In this document: positions 6,805 to 62,543 of the stretch, one piece after another | Position numbering within the stretch: the stretch's first letter is position 1 | Layout: each line of letters opens with the position of its first letter | The notes under the pieces: generated by a model | Seen by the model: the letters and a program-made list of their open reading frames with translations, nothing else | Told to the model about the DNA's origin: nothing | Database searches by the model: none | Translations under genes and position numbers: made by a program | IMG/VR virus record: IMGVR_UViG_3300027834_000005 | Location: 186,001 to 250,000 of that record | DNA: 64,000 bases | Direction: 5' to 3' (one strand)

Positions 6805-7712
6805 TTAAGGATGTATAATCCTACAGCCGTAGTAATGCGGGGAAGGGCGGATCTACTAACAGACCGTCACCAGTTAACCTTTGGTTTTCGGGTAAATTAT
6901 GCAAGCCGAGTTACCTGTGACTTCGTACAAACGGAGAACATGGTGTAAGCATCAGGGGTAAAATGAGATCAGGGCAACGCTGAGATCTTAGTCGGAGATG
7001 AGAATTTCCTTCACTCATACGCCTTATCGGGCAGATGTGATACCAGCAGTGACAAAGGGTAGGGTAATTGTTTGAGTCAGTGATGACAAGAGCTTTTATT
7101 CATTCTAGAGTGATCCTTCGGGTGACCTTGTTAGATGAACAGGTGTTAAAACTTGGGAGTCTTGAAAGAACGTACGGATTAGCCTCATCGGGTGAAAGTA
7201 CATAGAGATGTTGTGTATTCTGTCGCTAGAAATAGTTATGGAGCATTGTCAGCACACGTCTTGGTTAGATACAACTTAACGGTTTAGCTCAGTTGGTAGA
7301 GCGCTTGATTCAGACTCAAGAGGTCGGTGGTTCAAATCCATTACTCGTTTACTTAATTAAAGTAAAAAAAACGCAAAGTTGTTGACGGCATAGAAGAGAA
7401 AATATCGTAATCCCGTGCATCCTCGGATGAACACGTGGTCAAAGAGAACCTGCAAAGTGATCTTTGGTTTGAAGGATTCTGCACTTTGGGCTGCAACCCT
7501 TAACTGCCTGCGAAGGTAGAAGGAAAGAAGAATTCAGAGTATCTCTATGTGACAGTGGAACCGCCTTTCCACTTAAAATAAGGCCGATATGGTAAGATAC
7601 TGGGATGGACCTACGGGTTGTCTCAGTGGATAAGTTCTTAACCGTGCATGAGCAATGTACGAGGTACGGGAACGTAAAGACTTACCGATTGTACGTATAA
7701 TCTCAACGTATT
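6805..7712 (+). ncRNA. GOLLD-like giant structured RNA (~900 nt) with an embedded tRNA-like domain
   Basis: No ORF of 60 aa or more in any frame; many GNRA/UUCG-capped hairpins; long-range pairing GGTAAG/CTTACC near the 3' end; next to a tRNA cluster; ends TAATCTCAACGTA-T-run. Boundaries are approximate. Confidence 0.6.
7278..7350 (+). tRNA. tRNA-like element (anticodon CAG, short variable loop, no CCA) inside the giant ncRNA
   Basis: AACGGTT-TAGCTCAGTTGGTAGAGC-CTTGA TTCAGAC TCAAG-GGTGG TTCAAAT CCATT-ACTCGTT. Confidence 0.6.
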
Positions 7713-8752: not shown

Positions 8753-9100
8753 ATGGACACAGTTAATATTAATCGTTTAGAACTACTAGAAATCGTTAAA
8801 GCGAATCTAGAAACCCACAAGACAGATATTTTATCTGCTAAAACCGCACGTTTAGCACAGTACAAAGCTGATGTGGCTAAGGCGTTAGATGATCCAGAAG
8901 GATTACGGGAAATAACTGTTCCTAAAGTGCCAGATAACACTACTGAGTATGAGAGTACAGTTCGTAAATTAGAATTATCGGTAGATGACGTGATTGCATT
9001 AGAATCACATGAGTTTGACAACTATGTGATGGATAAATGGCACAGTACGCGTTTGTTAAAAGGTATGTTGAACACCTATAGTGCTTCGGGTATGCTTTAA
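8753..9100 (+). CDS. Hypothetical phage protein
   Basis: ORF from ATG 8753 (MDTVNINRLELL...). Confidence 0.65.
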   Translation: MDTVNINRLELLEIVKANLETHKTDILSAKTARLAQYKADVAKALDDPEGLREITVPKVPDNTTEYESTVRKLELSVDDVIALESHEFDNYVMDKWHSTRLLKGMLNTYSASGML

Positions 9101-9104
9101 TAGC

Positions 9105-9566
9105 ATGAAGAGTTTATTATTTGTCTTACTGCTGACATTTAGTGGCATAACAAATGCATCGTATCTGCTTATGCCAATCGATGGTGTGTATGATGGAGAT
9201 ACGATATATACTCACTTTCATGAGAAGAGAATACCTCCACCACTTAATGTATTGCGTGTTAGGGTTCAACACATAGATACACCTGAAATGCCTGCGGCGT
9301 CTTATGTTGAGACTGGCAAGCTTAATAAGGCTAAGTGTGACGCAGAAGCATTACTTGCAACACAAGCTAAGTTTGCATTAGTTAAGATGATTGGTGATTC
9401 AACTACCATGAAGTTAACTAATTTTGACTGGGGTTCATACCCTAGGAGAATTGTAGCCGACGTCAAGATTAATGGTCAAGACGTAGGACAGTTTCTGATA
9501 AATAACGGATATGCCGTCTACGATGATGGCAAAACATCAGTTGATAATAAAGACTGGTGTAAATGA
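9105..9566 (+). CDS. Thermonuclease (SNase) family protein with signal peptide
   Basis: VYDGDTI, RVQHIDTPE and DVGQFLINNGYA motifs. Confidence 0.85.
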   Translation: MKSLLFVLLLTFSGITNASYLLMPIDGVYDGDTIYTHFHEKRIPPPLNVLRVRVQHIDTPEMPAASYVETGKLNKAKCDAEALLATQAKFALVKMIGDSTTMKLTNFDWGSYPRRIVADVKINGQDVGQFLINNGYAVYDDGKTSVDNKDWCK

Positions 9567-9671: not shown

Positions 9672-10175
9672 ATGAAAATAGATATTATTGACTTCGAGGC
9701 GTCCGCCTTGCAGTATCCAAGTTTCCCAATACAAGTTGCTATTATAAAAGAAGACGGTTCTACCTTTGATAGGTATATTCGTCCGTCTGATAAATGGATA
9801 GAGACGTATAATTGGGACCCTGCCTCACAAGACATACATAATATACCACTTAATACGTTACTGGACATTGGTAAGCCTTTAAAAGAAGTCGCTGAAGACC
9901 TTAATGAATTCGTCGGTGATGGTACTGTATATTGTGACGGTGGATTGTACGATATTGGCTGGTGTAACGAACTCTATGAAGCGGCTAAAATTAAAAGAAC
10001 ATTTAGGCTAGGTAGTGTCACTGAATTGTATGAGTATCATGCCGGTGATAAACAGTTATGGGAAGTAAAACAGATAGCTGCTGATAAACTAAAACTAAAA
10101 GAGCATGATGCTCTTAATGACGTCAAGATCATACAATTGGCTGTTAATTGGAAGAGAAATAACTACATACCATGA
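9672..10175 (+). CDS. DEDDh 3'-5' exonuclease-like protein
   Basis: IIDFEAS, D..YD..W and HDALND motifs. Confidence 0.75.
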   Translation: MKIDIIDFEASALQYPSFPIQVAIIKEDGSTFDRYIRPSDKWIETYNWDPASQDIHNIPLNTLLDIGKPLKEVAEDLNEFVGDGTVYCDGGLYDIGWCNELYEAAKIKRTFRLGSVTELYEYHAGDKQLWEVKQIAADKLKLKEHDALNDVKIIQLAVNWKRNNYIP

Positions 10176-17577: not shown

Positions 17578-17653
17578 GGTCATGTAGCTCAGAGGCAGAG
17601 CACTCCCTTCATACGGGACGAGGTCGGGATCTCAGAATTCCCCATGACTACCA
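17578..17653 (+). tRNA. tRNA-Met(CAT) (elongator, or lysidine Ile2)
   Basis: CTCCC TTCATAC GGGAC, ACCA. Confidence 0.8.
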
Positions 17654-18232: not shown

Positions 18233-18324
18233 GCTTCGATAGCTCAATTGGTAGAGCGACGGATTTATATCCCGTGCAGTAGATAACTGGTCGGTTGGGG
18301 GTTCGAATCCCCCTCGAAGTACCA
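18233..18324 (+). tRNA. tRNA-Ile(TAT) with extended variable arm
   Basis: GCTTCGA/TCGAAGT acceptor; ACGGA TTTATAT CCCGT. Confidence 0.7.
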
Positions 18325-18809: not shown

Positions 18810-18884
18810 GCACTTGTAGCTGAGATGGATTAGCGACGGATTGAAGTCCCGTATAGAAAGGATCGTTACCTTTCAAGTGCACCA
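18810..18884 (+). tRNA. tRNA-Phe(GAA)
   Basis: ACGGA TTGAAGT CCCGT. Confidence 0.85.
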
Positions 18885-19024
18885 AATTTCGCTAGTACTG
18901 GGTTCTGCCCAAGGATCGCAACCTTGGCTTAGTATTAGCGCAATATTTTGACACTACTGTCCCATGGGGGATATCCTCGAAAGAGGCAGCATGCTCTAAG
19001 TGTGCGGTGTCAAAAACTAATCAG

Positions 19025-19076
19025 CTGGCCTGATGAGTCCTAACAGGGACGAAACGAGAGTAAATCTCGTCGCCAG
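19025..19076 (+). ncRNA. Type I hammerhead ribozyme; predicted cleavage after C19071 at tRNA-Tyr +1
   Basis: CTGGC-CTGATGA-GTCC..GGAC-GAAA-CGAGA..TCTCG-TC-GCCAG: complete core and three stems. Confidence 0.95.
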
Positions 19077-19154
19077 AGTAGCAGCGTAATTGGTAGCGCC
19101 CCGCACTGTAAATGCGCATTCCCGTTGTTGGTTCGAATCCAACCTTTGGCACCA
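19072..19154 (+). tRNA. tRNA-Tyr(GTA)
   Basis: GCCAGAG/CTTTGGC acceptor; CCGCA CTGTAAA TGCGC. Confidence 0.85.
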
Positions 19155-19174
19155 AATTAAAAAAAACTAATCAG

Positions 19175-19225
19175 TCCGCCTGATGAGTCTTATTAGAGAC
19201 GAAACATCTTACGAGATGTCGCGGG
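19175..19225 (+). ncRNA. Type I hammerhead ribozyme; predicted cleavage after C19220 at tRNA-Tyr +1
   Basis: TCCGC-CTGATGA-GTCT..AGAC-GAAA-CATCT TACG AGATG-TC-GCGGG. Confidence 0.95.
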
Positions 19226-19303
19226 AGACGTACCACTGGAAGGTATATCGGGCTGTAACCCCGACGCGAAAGCATATAGGTTCGAGTCCTATCTCCCGTA
19301 CCA
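19221..19303 (+). tRNA. tRNA-Tyr(GTA)
   Basis: GCGGGAG/CTCCCGT acceptor; TCGGG CTGTAAC CCCGA. Confidence 0.85.
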
Positions 19304-19345
19304 AATTACATAGGTAAGTAATAGCCTGACATATTACAAAGTTTT

Positions 19346-19421
19346 GGACCCTTAGCTCAATCGGGAGAGCACCGAGCCGATAACTCGGAGGTAGTTGGAT
19401 CGAAACCAACAGGGTCTACCA
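19346..19421 (+). tRNA. tRNA-Ile(GAT)
   Basis: CCGAG CCGATAA CTCGG. Confidence 0.9.
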
Positions 19422-19428
19422 ATTTAAT

Positions 19429-19505
19429 TCCGTGGTGGAGCAGAGAGGTAATGCGCTTGGCTGTTAACCAAGATTTCGCTGGTTCGATCCCAGCCCACGG
19501 AGCCA
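19429..19505 (+). tRNA. tRNA-Asn(GTT)
   Basis: CTTGG CTGTTAA CCAAG. Confidence 0.9.
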
Positions 19506-31830: not shown

Positions 31831-32703
31831 ATGAAAACAAATAGCATACGAGTACGTTTAGATCAAGATCACGTCCATGTCACCAGTAAGGTGTTTAGTG
31901 GCGGCGAGATTCATGTCGATATCGATAGTCTTCCGGCTAAATGTCATGATTATACGATCAAAGCGCGTTTACAAAGCAGCGAAGACATTATGCACTTCCT
32001 TACTCTCTGTGATGCTATGTGGCGTCGTTATCCAGAGGCCCATGGAAAGGTAACCATTCCGTATTTGCCATATGCAAGACAAGATCGCATGTGTTCTAAA
32101 GGACAGCATTTCGGTTTACATGTCATGTCCCAATTATTATCTACTATACCACAAAAAACAATCACTACCTATGACCTTCATAGTAAAGTGGCGTCATCTT
32201 TGTTAGCGGAAGACGGTTTTGGTGTAATAGACATCCAGCAATATGATATCTTAATGAAGCATAGCTTAGGCGAAGACCTTGCAGACGGACGATTACGTCT
32301 AGTGTCACCGGATAAGGGCGCTAAGGATAAAACTGCACAGGTAAGTTCATTTTGTAACAGTAAAATGTCTACCATCGTGGGCGGTAAGACCAGAGATCCT
32401 AAGACTGGTAAGATTACCGAGTTCACAGTTGATGAAGATGACCTATGCGGTCAAGATTTACTCATTGTTGACGATATTTGTGATGGTGGCGGCACATTCA
32501 TTGGTCTTGCTGATGAATTGAAGAAACGTGGAGCTGGAGAAATCAGCTTATTCGTAACACACGGAATCTTCTCTAGAGGGTTCGACGGATTCTCTGGGCT
32601 TATTGATCATATCTATACGACTGACTCGTTCCGACGTAGTTCAGATTTACCATTTAATGGCGTAGTGGCGGAGAATGTAACTCTGACCACTATTAAGGTG
32701 TAG
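31831..32703 (+). CDS. prs: Ribose-phosphate pyrophosphokinase-like protein (Adps of NARP1-like pathway)
   Basis: FSGGE, PYLPYARQDR, DLHS, SPDKGA, LIVDDICDGGGTF, VTHGIFS motifs. Confidence 0.9.
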   Translation: MKTNSIRVRLDQDHVHVTSKVFSGGEIHVDIDSLPAKCHDYTIKARLQSSEDIMHFLTLCDAMWRRYPEAHGKVTIPYLPYARQDRMCSKGQHFGLHVMSQLLSTIPQKTITTYDLHSKVASSLLAEDGFGVIDIQQYDILMKHSLGEDLADGRLRLVSPDKGAKDKTAQVSSFCNSKMSTIVGGKTRDPKTGKITEFTVDEDDLCGQDLLIVDDICDGGGTFIGLADELKKRGAGEISLFVTHGIFSRGFDGFSGLIDHIYTTDSFRRSSDLPFNGVVAENVTLTTIKV

Positions 32704-32827
32704 TTATGGCTATGTTACGACGGGTTAAAGTGTTTATGGCGTCATATTGTGGTTGGGGTTGTGCCAGTTACAATCCTTTATGTGATGCTTGTGATGCTAC
32801 TAGAAACGATAATTAAAGGAGACTACC

Positions 32828-34495
32828 ATGACGGTACGATTACTAACAAAACCAGCATTTGAAGAAAAAGAGATTATCCAAGCACCCGCTTTATTGGATT
32901 TTTATAAAGCATTCCATCATCTTGCCTATCAAGACGGTGTGGAAGAGGTTGTTATCAACTTCACGGGTCGCAGCGGTAACCACAGTAACATCAAAGGCGG
33001 ATCTACGTACATGTGGGCCGGTCTTCAATCATTTATCAATGAAATCATTGTAGGTGAATGGAATAAGTTCTTTGCGGCAACTAAAGAACAGGCAGTAGCT
33101 GATTATAAGCGTGTTAATGAAGCCGGTTTAGGCGTAGTATGCGATACTAGCCATCTTGAAGCACTACATGACCTTGGATATATGCCTTTAGAGTTTAGAG
33201 GTCTATTGGAAGGGGTAGAAGTGCCATACGGCGTGGCAGCAATGACTTGCCGCAACACAATTGCCGAGTTTTACTTCCTACCGAACATGATTGAGACTAT
33301 CATGTCTGATGAAATCTGGCCAGTTCAGACTTCATTGACTACTGCGACTGAGTACATGCGTACTTTGAGTGAATTTGCCGCAATCGATGGTACTCCAGAA
33401 GGGTTACTTGGGTTCCTTATCCATGATTTCTCTATGCGCGGCATGATGGGTGGCAGAATGACAGGTGGTGCTGCATTATCTGGCATGGGACACTTGATGT
33501 CTGGCTTTGTAGGAAGCGACACAGTGCCTGCTGCATTGGCTCTGGAGAAGAACTACGGCGCTTACCTAGGCTTAGATCGTCCTTACGAAACAATCGCCTC
33601 AGTGAACGCTACGGAGCACAGTGTGCAGTGTTCTTTCAATAACAATGACTTGGCTTACTACCGTCACTGTATGAAAGTATCGCCTACTGGCATCCTTAGC
33701 TTAGTATCTGACGGTTATGACTTCTGGAAGCTTATTGCTGAAGTATTACCGGCACTTAAAAACGAGATTATGTCTCGTGACGGTAAAATCGTTATCCGTC
33801 CAGATAGCGGTGACCCAGCAGACGTGATTTGTGGTCTTCGTGAGAATATTGACTACCGTCGTACCAAAGATGGTAAGGCATACGCGATGAAATACTGGAA
33901 AGGTAGCGCCTTTATGGGTGCTGAGCAGACCGAATACGGTAAAGTAGTTAAAGAAGCAGCTCCTACTATCCCTGATATGGAAGTGAAAGGTTTAATTCAA
34001 GTATTATGGGAAATGTTTGGTGGTACTGAGTCTGGTGTTGTTGGCGGTAAGGTCTATAAGTTCTTAGACTCTCATATCGGCGCGATTTACGGCGATTCTA
34101 TCACTCTTGAGCGTCAACGTGACATTTATACACGTTTACACGCAAAAGGCTTCGCGGTAGGTAACATTGTATTGGGTGTTGGTTCTTTTACTTACCAATA
34201 TGTTACTCGTGATACTCATGGGTCTGCTGTTAAAGCGACTAATATGATTTTGAAAGGCGTAGATACTCCTATCAGCAAAGAAGTTAAGGGTGATGCGGTT
34301 AAAAAGTCTGCGAAAGGTCGTTTAGTTGTTAAGCGTATCGATAATAAGTACGTTCAATTCGATGAAGCTACTCCTGCGGGTGTTGAGGCTGACGATAATC
34401 AGCACCAACGAGTATGGATGGACGGTGAATGGATCAGAATCCAAACACTTAAGGACGTTCGTACTAATGTTAAGGAAACTTTAGAACCAGCTTGA
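32828..34495 (+). CDS. nadV: Nicotinamide phosphoribosyltransferase-like protein (Nampt/Namat)
   Basis: DFYK..H, HDFSMRG, GSDT, ATEHS, VSDGYD, IRPDSGDP, IYGDSIT, KKSAKG motifs. Confidence 0.92.
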   Translation: MTVRLLTKPAFEEKEIIQAPALLDFYKAFHHLAYQDGVEEVVINFTGRSGNHSNIKGGSTYMWAGLQSFINEIIVGEWNKFFAATKEQAVADYKRVNEAGLGVVCDTSHLEALHDLGYMPLEFRGLLEGVEVPYGVAAMTCRNTIAEFYFLPNMIETIMSDEIWPVQTSLTTATEYMRTLSEFAAIDGTPEGLLGFLIHDFSMRGMMGGRMTGGAALSGMGHLMSGFVGSDTVPAALALEKNYGAYLGLDRPYETIASVNATEHSVQCSFNNNDLAYYRHCMKVSPTGILSLVSDGYDFWKLIAEVLPALKNEIMSRDGKIVIRPDSGDPADVICGLRENIDYRRTKDGKAYAMKYWKGSAFMGAEQTEYGKVVKEAAPTIPDMEVKGLIQVLWEMFGGTESGVVGGKVYKFLDSHIGAIYGDSITLERQRDIYTRLHAKGFAVGNIVLGVGSFTYQYVTRDTHGSAVKATNMILKGVDTPISKEVKGDAVKKSAKGRLVVKRIDNKYVQFDEATPAGVEADDNQHQRVWMDGEWIRIQTLKDVRTNVKETLEPA

Positions 34496-38057: not shown

Positions 38058-38516
38058 ATGTCAATAGCAACTAAGCAAGTTGTAGTGGTGAGAACCGATG
38101 TGTTCTCTAAAAAAAATGAACAAGGAAAGATGGAATTAGATCCATCTCTCATTGGTAAAATTGGCATTCAAATGACACATGCTTCCAAGGCAGTCATACT
38201 CAATCAATTGAGGGATTCCAAATGGGTCCTCGTTAATAACATCCCCCGCACACTCGAACTTGCTGGTAAACCTGAAGAAGATCCAGTGTACCAATGGTGC
38301 ACGGGACCATTCACAGGCATAGCTCTTAAATGTAAAAGTGAAGTTAAACTCCAAAAACTTTACGACGAAGCTATAGCTGCCGGTCTACCATGTTCATACA
38401 TTGTGGATAGAGGGCTAACAGTATTCAATGGTGTGCCAACTGCTACGTGCATGGCTATTGGCCCAGCGAAATCCGAAGACATCGATAAAATTACTGGTAA
38501 GTTGAGATTGCTATGA
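38058..38516 (+). CDS. pth2: Peptidyl-tRNA hydrolase, Pth2 family
   Basis: KQVVVVRTD, GKI..Q..HA, DRGLT, TCMAIGP..IDKITGKLRLL. Confidence 0.9.
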   Translation: MSIATKQVVVVRTDVFSKKNEQGKMELDPSLIGKIGIQMTHASKAVILNQLRDSKWVLVNNIPRTLELAGKPEEDPVYQWCTGPFTGIALKCKSEVKLQKLYDEAIAAGLPCSYIVDRGLTVFNGVPTATCMAIGPAKSEDIDKITGKLRLL

Positions 38517-39244: not shown

Positions 39245-40669
39245 ATGAATATTAATTCAATTCATAATTCTAACGAAAAAACAGACACTATCGTCATTCT
39301 GGTAGATTCATCATACGTCGGCGACAAGATCATTGCGGCTCTTATTGAGAGCAAAGATTTCAAAGTGGAAACGGCAGGAACTACACATTTAACTGTAGAA
39401 ACTTCCGAAGACGATGTTTTACAGAAAACATTATACGTGGCTACTGGTTCGTTAGATGAATTCAATGAATCCACAGGTAATATCGACGTAGTGGCTAAAT
39501 CTATTGTCGCGTATCTTAAAGGTTCACCATCTGACATATTAACAGTGGCTGCAGAAAACAATGCAGTACGCGATTGTGGCCTTGAAGCTTTATGTTCATC
39601 ATTGGTCATTGCTGACTATAACTTTTCCCTAGAAGATAAGCCATCGCCGCTTACTATCAATATTTTGTTTGATGACGAAGCAAGCGCTACTCAGGCAGGC
39701 CCTTCAGTGAGTGATGGGGTAGATGCCGGTAATGCAATCAATTATACGCGTCGTTTAGGTGACCTACCAAGTAATGTCTGTACACCTACATACATGGCGC
39801 GTCAGGCGGTGTCCCAATTCAAGCAAGATAATGTGCGTGTTAGTGTCATTGGCGAAAGTGAAGCAAAAGAGCTTAACATGGGCGGTTTCATGAGTGTTAC
39901 TCAGGGTTCCGATGAAGAAGGCAAAATCATCATCTTCGAATATACCGGCGATGCGAATAACTCAGATACGGTTGCGTTAGTTGGTAAAGCGGTTACATTT
40001 GACAGCGGTGGTATCAGTATTAAGCCAAGTGCATCAATGGAAGAAATGAAATATGACATGTGTGGCGGTGCTACGGTATTTGGTGTGATTAAAGCTGCGG
40101 CTGATATGCAATTGCCTGTTAACCTTATTGGTGTCGTAGGCGCGGTAGAAAATATGCCATCTGGCAACGCTACTCGTCCAGGTGATATCATCAATATGAT
40201 GTCCGGTAAAACTGTTGAAGTTACTAATACGGATGCCGAAGGTCGTATGGTGCTGGCTGATCTTTTAACCTATGTTGGTGAAAATTATAAGCCTACTACG
40301 GTTCTAGATTTAGCAACGTTAACTGGTGCGTGCTGCGTAGCTTTAGGTGAACATGCCGCTGGTATCTTTACTGAAGATGATGCTCTGGCCACAAGCCTAT
40401 ACGATTCTGGTCAGAAAGTGAATGACCGTGTGTGGCGCTTACCAATGTGGGAAGACTACAACAAGCAAATGGATAGTGATTTTGCAGACATGGGTAACTC
40501 AGGTAAACGTGGTGCCGGTGCTAGTACAGCTGCGTGCTTCCTTAACCGTTTTGCTAGCGACTACGACTACAAATGGGCACATATTGACATTGCTGGCGTA
40601 GCGTGGAAAGGTAAAGCTACTGGTCGTCCTGTTAAGATGTTGCTTGACTACTTGACTACGGGTAAGTAA
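39245..40669 (+). CDS. pepA: Leucyl aminopeptidase (M17)
   Basis: VGKAVTFDSGG, MKYDMCGG, ENMPSG, NTDAEGR, DLATLTGA, WAHIDIAG. Confidence 0.95.
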   Translation: MNINSIHNSNEKTDTIVILVDSSYVGDKIIAALIESKDFKVETAGTTHLTVETSEDDVLQKTLYVATGSLDEFNESTGNIDVVAKSIVAYLKGSPSDILTVAAENNAVRDCGLEALCSSLVIADYNFSLEDKPSPLTINILFDDEASATQAGPSVSDGVDAGNAINYTRRLGDLPSNVCTPTYMARQAVSQFKQDNVRVSVIGESEAKELNMGGFMSVTQGSDEEGKIIIFEYTGDANNSDTVALVGKAVTFDSGGISIKPSASMEEMKYDMCGGATVFGVIKAAADMQLPVNLIGVVGAVENMPSGNATRPGDIINMMSGKTVEVTNTDAEGRMVLADLLTYVGENYKPTTVLDLATLTGACCVALGEHAAGIFTEDDALATSLYDSGQKVNDRVWRLPMWEDYNKQMDSDFADMGNSGKRGAGASTAACFLNRFASDYDYKWAHIDIAGVAWKGKATGRPVKMLLDYLTTGK

Positions 40670-42540: not shown

Positions 42541-42762
42541 ATGATTGAGATAGATTTTCATGGATGGCTTCCTGCTGCTGCCGAAGATAAGATCCATTCG
42601 ATGATAGGCGAAGCCAGACACGTAGGTGTCCCTACCCATATCAAGTTCATAACTGGGAATGGTAAAATAAAACAGATTGTTATTGATATAGCCAATACTT
42701 ATGGTGTTCACTGTCAAGAGCAACTAGGAAATAGAGGCGCTTTAATAGCGTTAATAGAATGA
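42541..42762 (+). CDS. Stand-alone Smr-domain protein
   Basis: IDFHG, FITGNG, N.GALIA motifs. Confidence 0.75.
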   Translation: MIEIDFHGWLPAAAEDKIHSMIGEARHVGVPTHIKFITGNGKIKQIVIDIANTYGVHCQEQLGNRGALIALIE

Positions 42763-43325
42763 AAGAATCAGAAGAGATACCAAAGCACGACAATTATTTA
42801 GTATTTGATTTAGAAGCTACTTGTTGCAATAAAGACAGTTTGGATCGTGACTCTATGGAAATCATAGAGATAGGCGCGGTTATGGTTGACGGTAAAACTT
42901 TCGAAATAATAGATGAGTTCTGTACATTTATTAAGCCGGTGAGAAATCCAACTCTCACTCCGTTTTGCAAAAGGTTGACGACAATCACACAGATAGAAGT
43001 TGACACTGCGCCAGAATATAAAGAAGCATTAGAATTATTCAAAAACTGGTACGCTGGTTACGAAGATGTGCTAATATGTTCTTGGGGTAACTATGACAAG
43101 AAACAATTTTCGCAAGATTCTCGTTTCCATGGTGTTGAGTCCCCAACAGCGGATAACCACTGTAATATGAAAAGAATATTCTCATTAGTGAAAGGTGTAA
43201 AAAGACGCTTCGGCGTTAAGAATGCCCTTCTTGAACTGGGGATGGAATTTGACGGTACTGCCCATCGCGGAATAGATGACGCTAGAAATACAGCGAGGTT
43301 GGCAAAGTACACATTTGGTGACTAG
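42759..43325 (+). CDS. ERI1/KapD-like DEDDh 3'-5' exonuclease
   Basis: FDLEATC, EIIEIGAV, LTTITQ, SWGNYD, HRGIDDARN. Confidence 0.9.
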   Translation: MKESEEIPKHDNYLVFDLEATCCNKDSLDRDSMEIIEIGAVMVDGKTFEIIDEFCTFIKPVRNPTLTPFCKRLTTITQIEVDTAPEYKEALELFKNWYAGYEDVLICSWGNYDKKQFSQDSRFHGVESPTADNHCNMKRIFSLVKGVKRRFGVKNALLELGMEFDGTAHRGIDDARNTARLAKYTFGD

Positions 43326-43759: not shown

Positions 43760-44090
43760 GCATGAAAAGAATTTTTCTCTATAATAAGAGAAATGAAAGA
43801 ATAACTGTATGAAACTAGGATGAGCAAGGAGACACGCGGGTTCGACTCCCGCCGCTTCCACCAAAGTGATATTAAACGTGAAGTTTTTTGGATCTGTTAT
43901 GGGGGCGTTTTGGATTCGACCTTCTTGTGATTTGAGGTGGACAGTTCGGCAAATGTGAAAGTCGTTAAGAGAAACCCTTTTGGGTAAACTCTCATAGAAA
44001 CACTAAATATAATTGCTAATGAAGAATTATACGCTCAAGCTGCCTAATCGCGCTTGATGAGGTTAGAGTCACCTTATTATCCAACGACAC
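43760..44090 (+). ncRNA. ssrA: Two-piece (circularly permuted) tmRNA; tag (A)ANEELYAQAA*
   Basis: 3' TLD piece GCGGGTTCGACTCCCGCCGCTTCCACCA ends at 43863; 5' piece GGGGGCG..GGATTCGAC starts at 43901; tag ORF 44015-44047; terminator hairpin 44093-44117. Confidence 0.9.
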
Positions 44091-44130
44091 ACGAATGGGG
44101 ACTTAATGTCCCCATTCACTTATCAGGGAT

Positions 44131-44481
44131 TTGATAATGGACAAGCACGGCCCAGTTTTAATTAATATGATACGTAGAACAGTACCGAAATTGATAGCGG
44201 AAGATCTAGTGGGTGTACAGCCTATGATATCACCTATTGCCCGATGGGAAAAATATCATGTAGTTTGGGTAATCACGACAAGCGGTGAGTTGGTATGTAA
44301 TGGCGATGTGTATATGCTAGCGAATTACGTCAACGACAAATTCACATGTAACCTAGGTGAAGTGCTAAGCGAAGAAGAGTATTTCCTAAGAGAGCTTGAT
44401 GGCTCCAATAAAGAATTAGATAATATTACTGACGTAGGTAAGGTTTTTTCCCTAAAGACTAGATATAACAGAAACATATAG
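44131..44481 (+). CDS. Small protein carrying a T4 gp23 Gol-region-like segment
   Basis: PVLINMIRRTVPKLIAEDLVGVQPMISP ... GKVFSLKTRY. Confidence 0.65.
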   Translation: MIMDKHGPVLINMIRRTVPKLIAEDLVGVQPMISPIARWEKYHVVWVITTSGELVCNGDVYMLANYVNDKFTCNLGEVLSEEEYFLRELDGSNKELDNITDVGKVFSLKTRYNRNI

Positions 44482-44534: not shown

Positions 44535-45413
44535 ATGAAAGATAGTTATATATTAAACTGTGGTCCTAGTGATAAGAACGGGACCGATTGGGTATATCCA
44601 GTAGGCGCTGCGCCTTCCGAGTTACCAGAGAATTTTTCTAGAAGAAAATTTACCAGAAACGTATCCAATCAAGGAACCGTAGGTTCGTGTGTAGGCCAAA
44701 CATTAAGCGTGGTATTTAATGATACTACCCAATGTGAGTCAGTTAGTCTTTCTCCTATGTGGATATATAAGAGAGCAAAAAGGCATGACTATTGGGCAGG
44801 CGAAGATTACTCCGGCACGTCCATCTCAGGGGCCTGTTTGGCGCTTAAGAAGGAAGGCGCGTGTAAGGAGGAGTTCTATCCTTATCATGGCTCTACGGAG
44901 GATTACGAGCCTCTGACGGGTGCTATAGCTGACGCAGATAGAAGAAAGGTAATAGCGTTTTATAATTTGGCTGTTCACAGAATAGACGAGATAAAGAATC
45001 TATTACTCAAAGAATCACTGGCTTGTTCCATTGCCGTACATTCTGGATTCTATGCCGCTAAAGATGATGGGATAGTTGTTGAAGCAGGGTACGAAGCGAG
45101 TAAGTATCAAGGCGGTCATGCAATGGCCATAGTCGGATGGAAAGTTATAGACGGTATACTACATTGGGAATTCCAGAATTCATGGGGTGATAATTGGGGA
45201 GACGATGGTTTCTGTTTCATTCCTCATACGTTATTAGAGAATATAAAATCGTCTAACGTGTATTATCTAGTGACTGAAAATGAAGACAATGTTAGAATTG
45301 AAAAAGAGAAAAGAAAACGTAGTAAGTTAATGAGTATAATCGCGTATGTGCCGGAGCTGTTAGTTGAAGGCATGAGGTACTGCATTACTTATATAAAGAA
45401 TAAGTTTTCATAA
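44535..45413 (+). CDS. Papain-family (C1) cysteine peptidase
   Basis: NQGTVGSCVG, GGHAMAIVGW, QNSWGDNWGDDG. Confidence 0.9.
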   Translation: MKDSYILNCGPSDKNGTDWVYPVGAAPSELPENFSRRKFTRNVSNQGTVGSCVGQTLSVVFNDTTQCESVSLSPMWIYKRAKRHDYWAGEDYSGTSISGACLALKKEGACKEEFYPYHGSTEDYEPLTGAIADADRRKVIAFYNLAVHRIDEIKNLLLKESLACSIAVHSGFYAAKDDGIVVEAGYEASKYQGGHAMAIVGWKVIDGILHWEFQNSWGDNWGDDGFCFIPHTLLENIKSSNVYYLVTENEDNVRIEKEKRKRSKLMSIIAYVPELLVEGMRYCITYIKNKFS

Positions 45414-61904: not shown

Positions 61905-62543
61905 ATGATAGTTGGTGTCATGGGTTTAATTGGTGCGGGAAAGGATACCGTATCTGACATCTTCGTCAGGGAACATGGCTTTGAAAAAATAAGCTTTGCT
62001 GACTCTGTGAAGGATGTCGTGTCCACAGTCTTTGACTGGGACAGAGAAATGATGGAAGGCGCAACGCCTGAGTCAAGAGAATTTAGGGATGCAGTCGATC
62101 AAGACTGGTCCGATATGTTAGGCGTAGAAATGTTTTCTCCTAGAAAAGCCATGCAGATGGTTGGCACGGATACGTTTAGAAATCACTTTAATAATAATAT
62201 CTGGGTTTATAATACGATGCGTCGTGCGTCAAAGTACGAAAATACAGTAATCAGTGACGTAAGATTCGTCAATGAAGCTAACGCAATATTAGATGCCGGT
62301 GGAGTTTTGATAAGAGTGTTTGGCAGCAAGACACCGTCGTGGTATGATGTGGCTCAAATGGCTGCTGAAGGCGACGAGATCTCTGAAATGTACATGGAGT
62401 CCCACTATCCACACGTGCACAGAAGTGAATGGGATTGCGCAGCAGTAGAGGCCAATTACGTGATTGAGAACACCGGCACCAAGGATGATCTTAATAGTGT
62501 AGTACTTGAAGTGCACGAAAGTGTGGAGGCTGTTAGACAATAA
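61905..62543 (+). CDS. Deoxynucleoside monophosphate kinase (T4 gp1-like)
   Basis: G..GAGKDT, SFAD..K, SPR..MQ..GT, ISDVRF.NE, H.SE. Confidence 0.9.
   Translation: MIVGVMGLIGAGKDTVSDIFVREHGFEKISFADSVKDVVSTVFDWDREMMEGATPESREFRDAVDQDWSDMLGVEMFSPRKAMQMVGTDTFRNHFNNNIWVYNTMRRASKYENTVISDVRFVNEANAILDAGGVLIRVFGSKTPSWYDVAQMAAEGDEISEMYMESHYPHVHRSEWDCAAVEANYVIENTGTKDDLNSVVLEVHESVEAVRQ

Follow-up and report, generated by a model that had tools for sequence, protein, structure and literature searches.

The tRNA-Tyr region of a marine viral contig

The window analysed is a stretch of 64,000 nucleotides (positions 186,001 to 250,000) of IMGVR_UViG_3300027834_000005, a 347-kb marine viral contig attributed to a jumbo phage. 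It carries 35 tRNAs called by ARAGORN and a permuted tmRNA, and its principal features are listed in Table 1. Two units of the same design lie one after the other and each comprises, in order, a 12-nt box (AAAACTAATCAG), a 5-nt strand, the core CTGATGA, a 14-nt stem-loop II, GAA, a stem-loop III of 16-17 nt beginning with A and ending with T, a C and a tRNA-Tyr(GUA) whose first five bases are complementary to the 5-nt strand. This is the full anatomy of a type I hammerhead ribozyme, with stems II and III closed by loops and stem I open, and the predicted cuts after the C at position N17 would release both tRNAs at +1. The initial annotation had described these two elements as complete hammerheads placed to cut at the first tRNA nucleotide, and this observation is confirmed.

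Table 1. Coordinates of the features in the window and in related loci (L numbers designate loci fetched by the pattern scan described below)
Feature	Position	Strand	Details
Upstream box, copy 1	19013-19024	+	AAAACTAATCAG; AUCAG at 19020-19024
Hammerhead HH1	19025-19071	+	type I
HH1 stem I 5' strand	19025-19029	+	CTGGC
HH1 core	19030-19036	+	CTGATGA; CUGAU at 19030-19034
HH1 stem-loop II	19037-19050	+
HH1 GAA	19051-19053	+
HH1 stem-loop III	19054-19070	+
HH1 C17	19071	+	predicted cut after this nucleotide
tRNA-Tyr-1 (GUA)	19072-19154	+	CCA encoded; GCCAG at 19072-19076 is the 3' strand of HH1 stem I
Upstream box, copy 2	19163-19174	+	AAAACTAATCAG; in the A-rich spacer after tRNA-Tyr-1
Hammerhead HH2	19175-19220	+	type I
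HH2 stem I 5' strand	19175-19179	+	TCCGC
HH2 core	19180-19186	+	CTGATGA
HH2 stem-loop II	19187-19200	+
HH2 GAA	19201-19203	+
HH2 stem-loop III	19204-19219	+
HH2 C17	19220	+	predicted cut after this nucleotide
tRNA-Tyr-2 (GUA)	19221-19303	+	long variable arm, CCA encoded; GCGGG at 19221-19225 is the 3' strand of HH2 stem I
Box-core complementarity	19020-19034; 19170-19184	+	AUCAG with CUGAU
Folding elements between tRNA-Phe and HH1	18885-19013	+	long hairpin at about 18889-18941; cloverleaf-like four-way junction at 18948-19013
GOLLD RNA match (RF02032)	7205-7709	+	tRNA-Leu(CAG) at 7278-7350 lies inside it
tRNA found by Rfam	17578-17650	+	39.4 bits; missed by ARAGORN
tRNA-Ile(UAU)	18233-18324	+	unusually long, 92 nt
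SNase-like ORF, weak	9081-9566	+	inside the tRNA region
RNase T-like ORF, weak	9672-10175	+	inside the tRNA region
Peptidyl-tRNA hydrolase PTH2	38058-38516	+
RNase T-family exonuclease	42759-43325	+	90.7 bits; just upstream of the tmRNA
Permuted tmRNA	43760-44138	+	tag ANEELYAQAA
PRPP-synthetase-like and NAPRTase	31831-34495	+	NAD salvage
M17 leucyl aminopeptidase	39245-40669	+	405 bits
Papain-family protease	44535-45413	+
T4 gp1-like dNMP kinase	61905-62543	+	not a polynucleotide kinase
DUF7230 small ORF, L003	8287-8442	+	runs into the hammerhead
DUF7230 small ORF, L010	4329-4484	-	runs into the hammerhead
Hammerhead before YrlA, L017	6031-6224	+	RF02553, 69.7 bits, at threshold
Hammerhead before YrlA, L012	9774-9965	-	RF02553, 57.7 bits
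Hammerhead before YrlA (probable), L007	41-160	-
Second hammerhead, L009	1435-1491	+	followed by GGGGAAGAGAG...; tRNA-Met-like gene at 1597-1682

All core nucleotides (C3 U4 G5 A6 N7 G8 A9 and G12 A13 A14), the closing pairs G10.1-C11.1 and A15.1-U16.1 and a non-G N17 are present in both copies, and the minimum-free-energy fold of each ribozyme alone is the canonical three-way junction. The core pattern occurs twice in the window against 0.08 expected. The two copies differ by compensatory changes, being CTGGC/GCCAG against TCCGC/GCGGG in stem I, GTCC/GGAC against GTCT/AGAC in stem II and unrelated sequences in stem III. Rfam Hammerhead_1 (RF00163) aligned both copies end to end but with scores of 20.8 and 16.7 bits, below the gathering threshold of 34; the consensus of this family has a much shorter stem III, and 10-11 nucleotides of the window's stem III are unaligned insertions there. 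The tRNA-Tyr-2 gene was called by ARAGORN at default settings, whereas tRNA-Tyr-1 was called only at a relaxed threshold, starting exactly at cut+1, and had a partial match of 33.6 bits to Rfam tRNA. The latter is a non-canonical tRNA with a short variable region and extra nucleotides before the D stem.

The 129 nt that precede HH1 fold strongly (z = -4.5) and have no Rfam match. Elsewhere in the window the match to GOLLD RNA is full length (122.4 bits, E 9.5e-32) but below the gathering score of 150, and looks like a divergent GOLLD in a marine jumbo phage. The window also encodes a set of translation-maintenance functions (the tmRNA, PTH2, the RNase T-family exonuclease and the two weaker ORFs of the tRNA region) and some auxiliary metabolic genes.

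Recurrence, covariation and cut register

Viral, metagenome and genome collections were scanned with a pattern that demands only the hammerhead core and a tRNA T-loop 65-95 nt downstream, blind to isotype and to the stems. A narrower form of this pattern gave 10 loci in IMG/VR and the scan fetched 303 loci. A strict parser (at least 3 bp in stems II and III, at least 4 bp in stem I and a non-G N17) identified 36 hammerheads in 2.04 Mb, 32 of them distinct, with N17 being C in 22, A in 9 and U in 1. Controls gave 0 hits on reversed or complement-only sequences and 1-2 hits when the stem I 5' strand was taken at offsets 11, 15 or 20; the exception is offset 7 with 10 hits, possibly due to a repeated motif in one closely related subfamily. 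The core nucleotides are invariant columns in the 32 aligned examples, although the MAFFT alignment misplaced the 3' strand and covariation was therefore counted on a model-guided alignment.

The covariance model R1, built from eight hammerheads of other phage contigs and none from the window, identified both window copies at 52.2 and 52.3 bits (E about 1e-12) and no other site in the 64 kb. On the 30 hammerheads aligned by the model all three stems covary: 98.9% of cells form standard pairs against 72% in shuffles, 14 of 16 pairs change on both sides, no shuffle of 500 reaches the observed covariation score and sliding the partners drops pairing to 27-47%. The only invariant pairs are G10.1-C11.1 and A15.1-U16.1, the two that hammerheads require. 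The alignment was fitted to the structure and stem I was pre-selected by the parser, so these figures lean towards the structure.

The position of the tRNA is not imposed by the parser. Nevertheless, ARAGORN placed the tRNA start at cut+1 for every Tyr example found (the two window copies, L002, L003, L006, L010, L019, L026, L036, L185, L240, L269, L290, L292 and L300) and Rfam did the same for L009. In the hammerhead-bearing loci the cut is flush for 13 of 17 default-called tRNA-Tyr against 3 of 284 other tRNAs (Fisher 6e-17); some of these sequences are related, which overstates independence, but 23 different stem I sequences are represented. Two of those three are tRNA-His (L004 and L296), where the tRNA starts at cut+2 and the cut leaves exactly the G-1 characteristic of tRNA-His, and one tRNA-Gly keeps a U-1. 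Other exceptions are His, Leu, Ser and Arg examples with leaders of 10-15 nt; L017, L012 and probably L007, where type I hammerheads are placed 0-11 nt before YrlA Y-RNA-like genes; the second hammerhead of L009, which is not followed by a tRNA start and lies about 110 nt before a tRNA-Met-like gene; and four tRNA-Tyr that lack a hammerhead. The association is strongly enriched for Tyr but not exclusive, in contrast to the Tyr-specific maturation inferred in the initial annotation.

Close relatives were identified in Logan contigs from three marine-sediment DNA runs. In run X2 the segment upstream of HH1 (18857-19017) holds about 30 substitutions and indels, whereas the 413 nt from 19018 to 19430 hold a single substitution, G19213A, in the loop of HH2 stem III. 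This is consistent with purifying selection on the ribozyme-tRNA block next to a fast-changing spacer. The first box is not conserved in close relatives (changes at 19014, 19015 and 19017 and a deletion at 19019), while no base change other than G19213A was found across 19149-19430, with one A inserted behind 19158 in the spacer upstream of the second box. In the structured element that precedes HH1, the closing stem shows paired changes in run X2 (A18953-U19008 to G-C and C18954-G19007 to U-A), and one X4 contig lacks 18941-19017 entirely. In run X3 the segment 18933-19148, with HH1 and tRNA-Tyr-1, is replaced by 143 unrelated letters while HH2 and tRNA-Tyr-2 are identical, the first unit being therefore a variable cassette. 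The only RNA library with a hit, an oligo-dT sediment run, holds one contig of an L003-like relative that spans the uncut junction; it may be DNA carry-over and says nothing either way about cleavage.

In cultured phages the fusion was not identified. Searches by blastn with the region, the ribozyme-tRNA block and an L010-type module against 50,697 phage records found only tRNA pieces, and three cultured jumbo phages whose tRNA-Tyr T-arms matched have no hammerhead by model R1.

Proposed maturation of the tRNA 5' ends

The best explanation is that both elements are functional type I hammerheads embedded in a polycistronic tRNA transcript, and that co-transcriptional self-cleavage makes the mature 5' end without RNase P. 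The RNase P-independent maturation inferred in the initial annotation is supported by this comparative evidence and is considered likely, although cleavage itself, the 5'-OH end and the order of events are inferred. In the proposed order, the first five nucleotides of each tRNA-Tyr pair with the leader strand as they emerge from RNA polymerase and complete stem I, the three-way junction folds and the 2'-OH of C17 attacks the next phosphate. The upstream piece would keep the ribozyme and end in a 2',3'-cyclic phosphate, and the tRNA would be released starting at G1 with a 5'-OH, either used as such or phosphorylated later. When the acceptor 3' strand is transcribed about 70 nt later, the 7-bp acceptor stem would replace the 5-bp stem I. 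The 3' ends, with an encoded CCA followed by an A/U-rich spacer, are left to host or phage nucleases.

The full-length precursors fold with the acceptor stem formed and the leader as a hairpin in which AUCAG of the box pairs with CUGAU of the core. Such complementarity of 4 bp or more was identified in 5 of 32 hammerheads against 0.23 expected; L240 has GUCAG opposite CUGAC, the base change that preserves the pairing, and L004 has a 6-bp version. This is possibly a post-cleavage or off-state hairpin, but it is not universal. The thermodynamically best full-length precursor is not the active fold, and uncut molecules would be ordinary RNase P substrates, so the ribozyme may be dispensable. The pairing between CTAAT and the loop II ATTAG of HH2 proposed in the initial annotation is not supported: 23% of shuffles do as well, HH1 has no such pairing and the family shows no excess (mean best helix of 3.59 bp against 3.52 bp in shuffles). 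An AG dinucleotide precedes the 5-bp stem I in 18 of 30 hammerheads and also follows the 3' strand in many of the sequences listed, and loop II has a recurrent UAxxRG; together these may form the tertiary contact that natural hammerheads need. With a stem I of only 5 bp and no loop II tertiary partner demonstrated, the rate at cellular Mg2+ is uncertain.

An alternative is that the hammerheads act mainly as transcript separators, detaching tRNA-Tyr from whatever lies upstream or defining the 3' end of the upstream RNA, with the flush tRNA end being secondary and within the reach of RNase P. In one subfamily (L003, L010, L019, L026, L036, L185, L292 and L300) a small basic ORF with a Shine-Dalgarno site (Pfam DUF7230, 35-45 bits, above threshold) runs straight into the hammerhead with no in-frame stop before the cut in 8 of 8 cases, the first stop lying 15-48 nt inside tRNA-Tyr, and self-cleavage would leave a non-stop mRNA. 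No ArfA match was found for this ORF in a profile search of PDB chains at E up to 10, tblastn against cultured phages found nothing and the window has no homologue. In other loci a protein gene ends just before the hammerhead, in the window the strongly structured RNA precedes HH1, and some hammerheads leave 10-15-nt leaders that still need RNase P. However, the upstream partners are heterogeneous (an ORF, a structured RNA, a tRNA at 0-6 nt or nothing recognisable) whereas the downstream partner and the exact +1 or G-1 register are constant, and a simple separator would not need stem I to be made from the acceptor strand. This reading is considered unlikely. That the motifs are inactive relics or chance look-alikes and RNase P makes the 5' ends is very improbable: the scores below the Rfam threshold and the lack of expression data would favour it, but the cores are perfect, three stems covary, the independent model detects both copies, the block is conserved and the fusion recurs in dozens of unrelated contigs.

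A further, doubtful possibility is that the 5'-OH end itself, or ribozyme-gated timing, is what matters. A 5'-hydroxyl tRNA-Tyr or tRNA-His would escape 5'-monophosphate-dependent decay or a host anti-phage nuclease aimed at these tRNAs, or would be a substrate for a phage kinase or ligase pathway. The isotype bias, to Tyr and then His, and the phage's investment in its own translation maintenance are in agreement with this, as would be the GUN anticodon of both tRNAs, apparently the target set of colicin E5-type nucleases, and the possible targeting of tRNA-Tyr by a retron-associated effector. Nevertheless, nothing in the sequence bears on end chemistry after cleavage, and the Gly, YrlA and leader-type cases do not fit a Tyr/His defence story. 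No polynucleotide kinase, RtcB or RNA ligase was identified by Pfam among 50 of about 103 window ORFs, the other 283 kb of the contig being outside this search; against the proposed maturation itself, HisRS of E. coli may require the 5' phosphate of G-1, which would make a 5'-OH awkward without a kinase. In its broadest form, which remains doubtful, phages from many environments would carry a dedicated RNA-only system in which a hammerhead fused in register to selected structured RNAs, above all tRNA-Tyr but also tRNA-His at G-1 and YrlA, makes them independent of host RNase P and gives them a 5'-hydroxyl end that matters in itself.

Relation to known ribozymes and tRNA processing

RNase P is regarded as the near-universal maker of tRNA 5' ends, and no report of a natural hammerhead fused to a tRNA 5' end was found in the literature searched, which was incomplete. 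A natural and recurrent bypass by a small ribozyme would give many phage and bacterial hammerheads, whose roles are largely unknown, a concrete biological function. The ribozyme class is known and what is new is its conserved and mechanistically specific role. Phage and prophage hammerheads flanking genes, with unknown roles, were described previously (PMC3088659), a term search of that text finding tRNA only in its reference list. The elements of the window share with type I hammerheads (RF00163) the catalytic core, the open stem I topology and a GUCC...GGAC stem II close to the Rfam consensus, and differ in that the 3' strand of stem I is the first five nucleotides of a tRNA, so that the predicted product is a mature tRNA 5' end.

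Theta ribozymes (PMC10879173) are also small self-cleaving ribozymes fused directly to phage tRNA genes and proposed to replace a host processing step, but they have an HDV-like fold, lie 3' of the tRNA, trim the trailer, occur in gut phages and are linked to suppressor tRNAs. That paper states that 5' ends come from RNase P and does not mention hammerheads. No HDV-like family was identified in Rfam scans at E up to 10 over 18850-19350 or up to 0.5 over the whole window, and the present case, a different ribozyme class at the 5' end of sense tRNA-Tyr in a marine phage, would be the 5' counterpart of the theta ribozymes. In Nanoarchaeum equitans mature tRNA 5' ends appear to be made without RNase P as well, by initiation of transcription at +1 and with a triphosphate, whereas here the end would be set by RNA self-cleavage inside a polycistronic transcript and be a hydroxyl. 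The closest in design are apparently the engineered hammerhead-tRNA fusions for in vitro transcription ('transzymes', Fechter et al. 1998), in which a cis hammerhead whose stem I pairs with the acceptor 5' strand releases a tRNA with a 5'-OH at +1; those are laboratory constructs, and the window shows the same solution arising naturally and maintained by selection.
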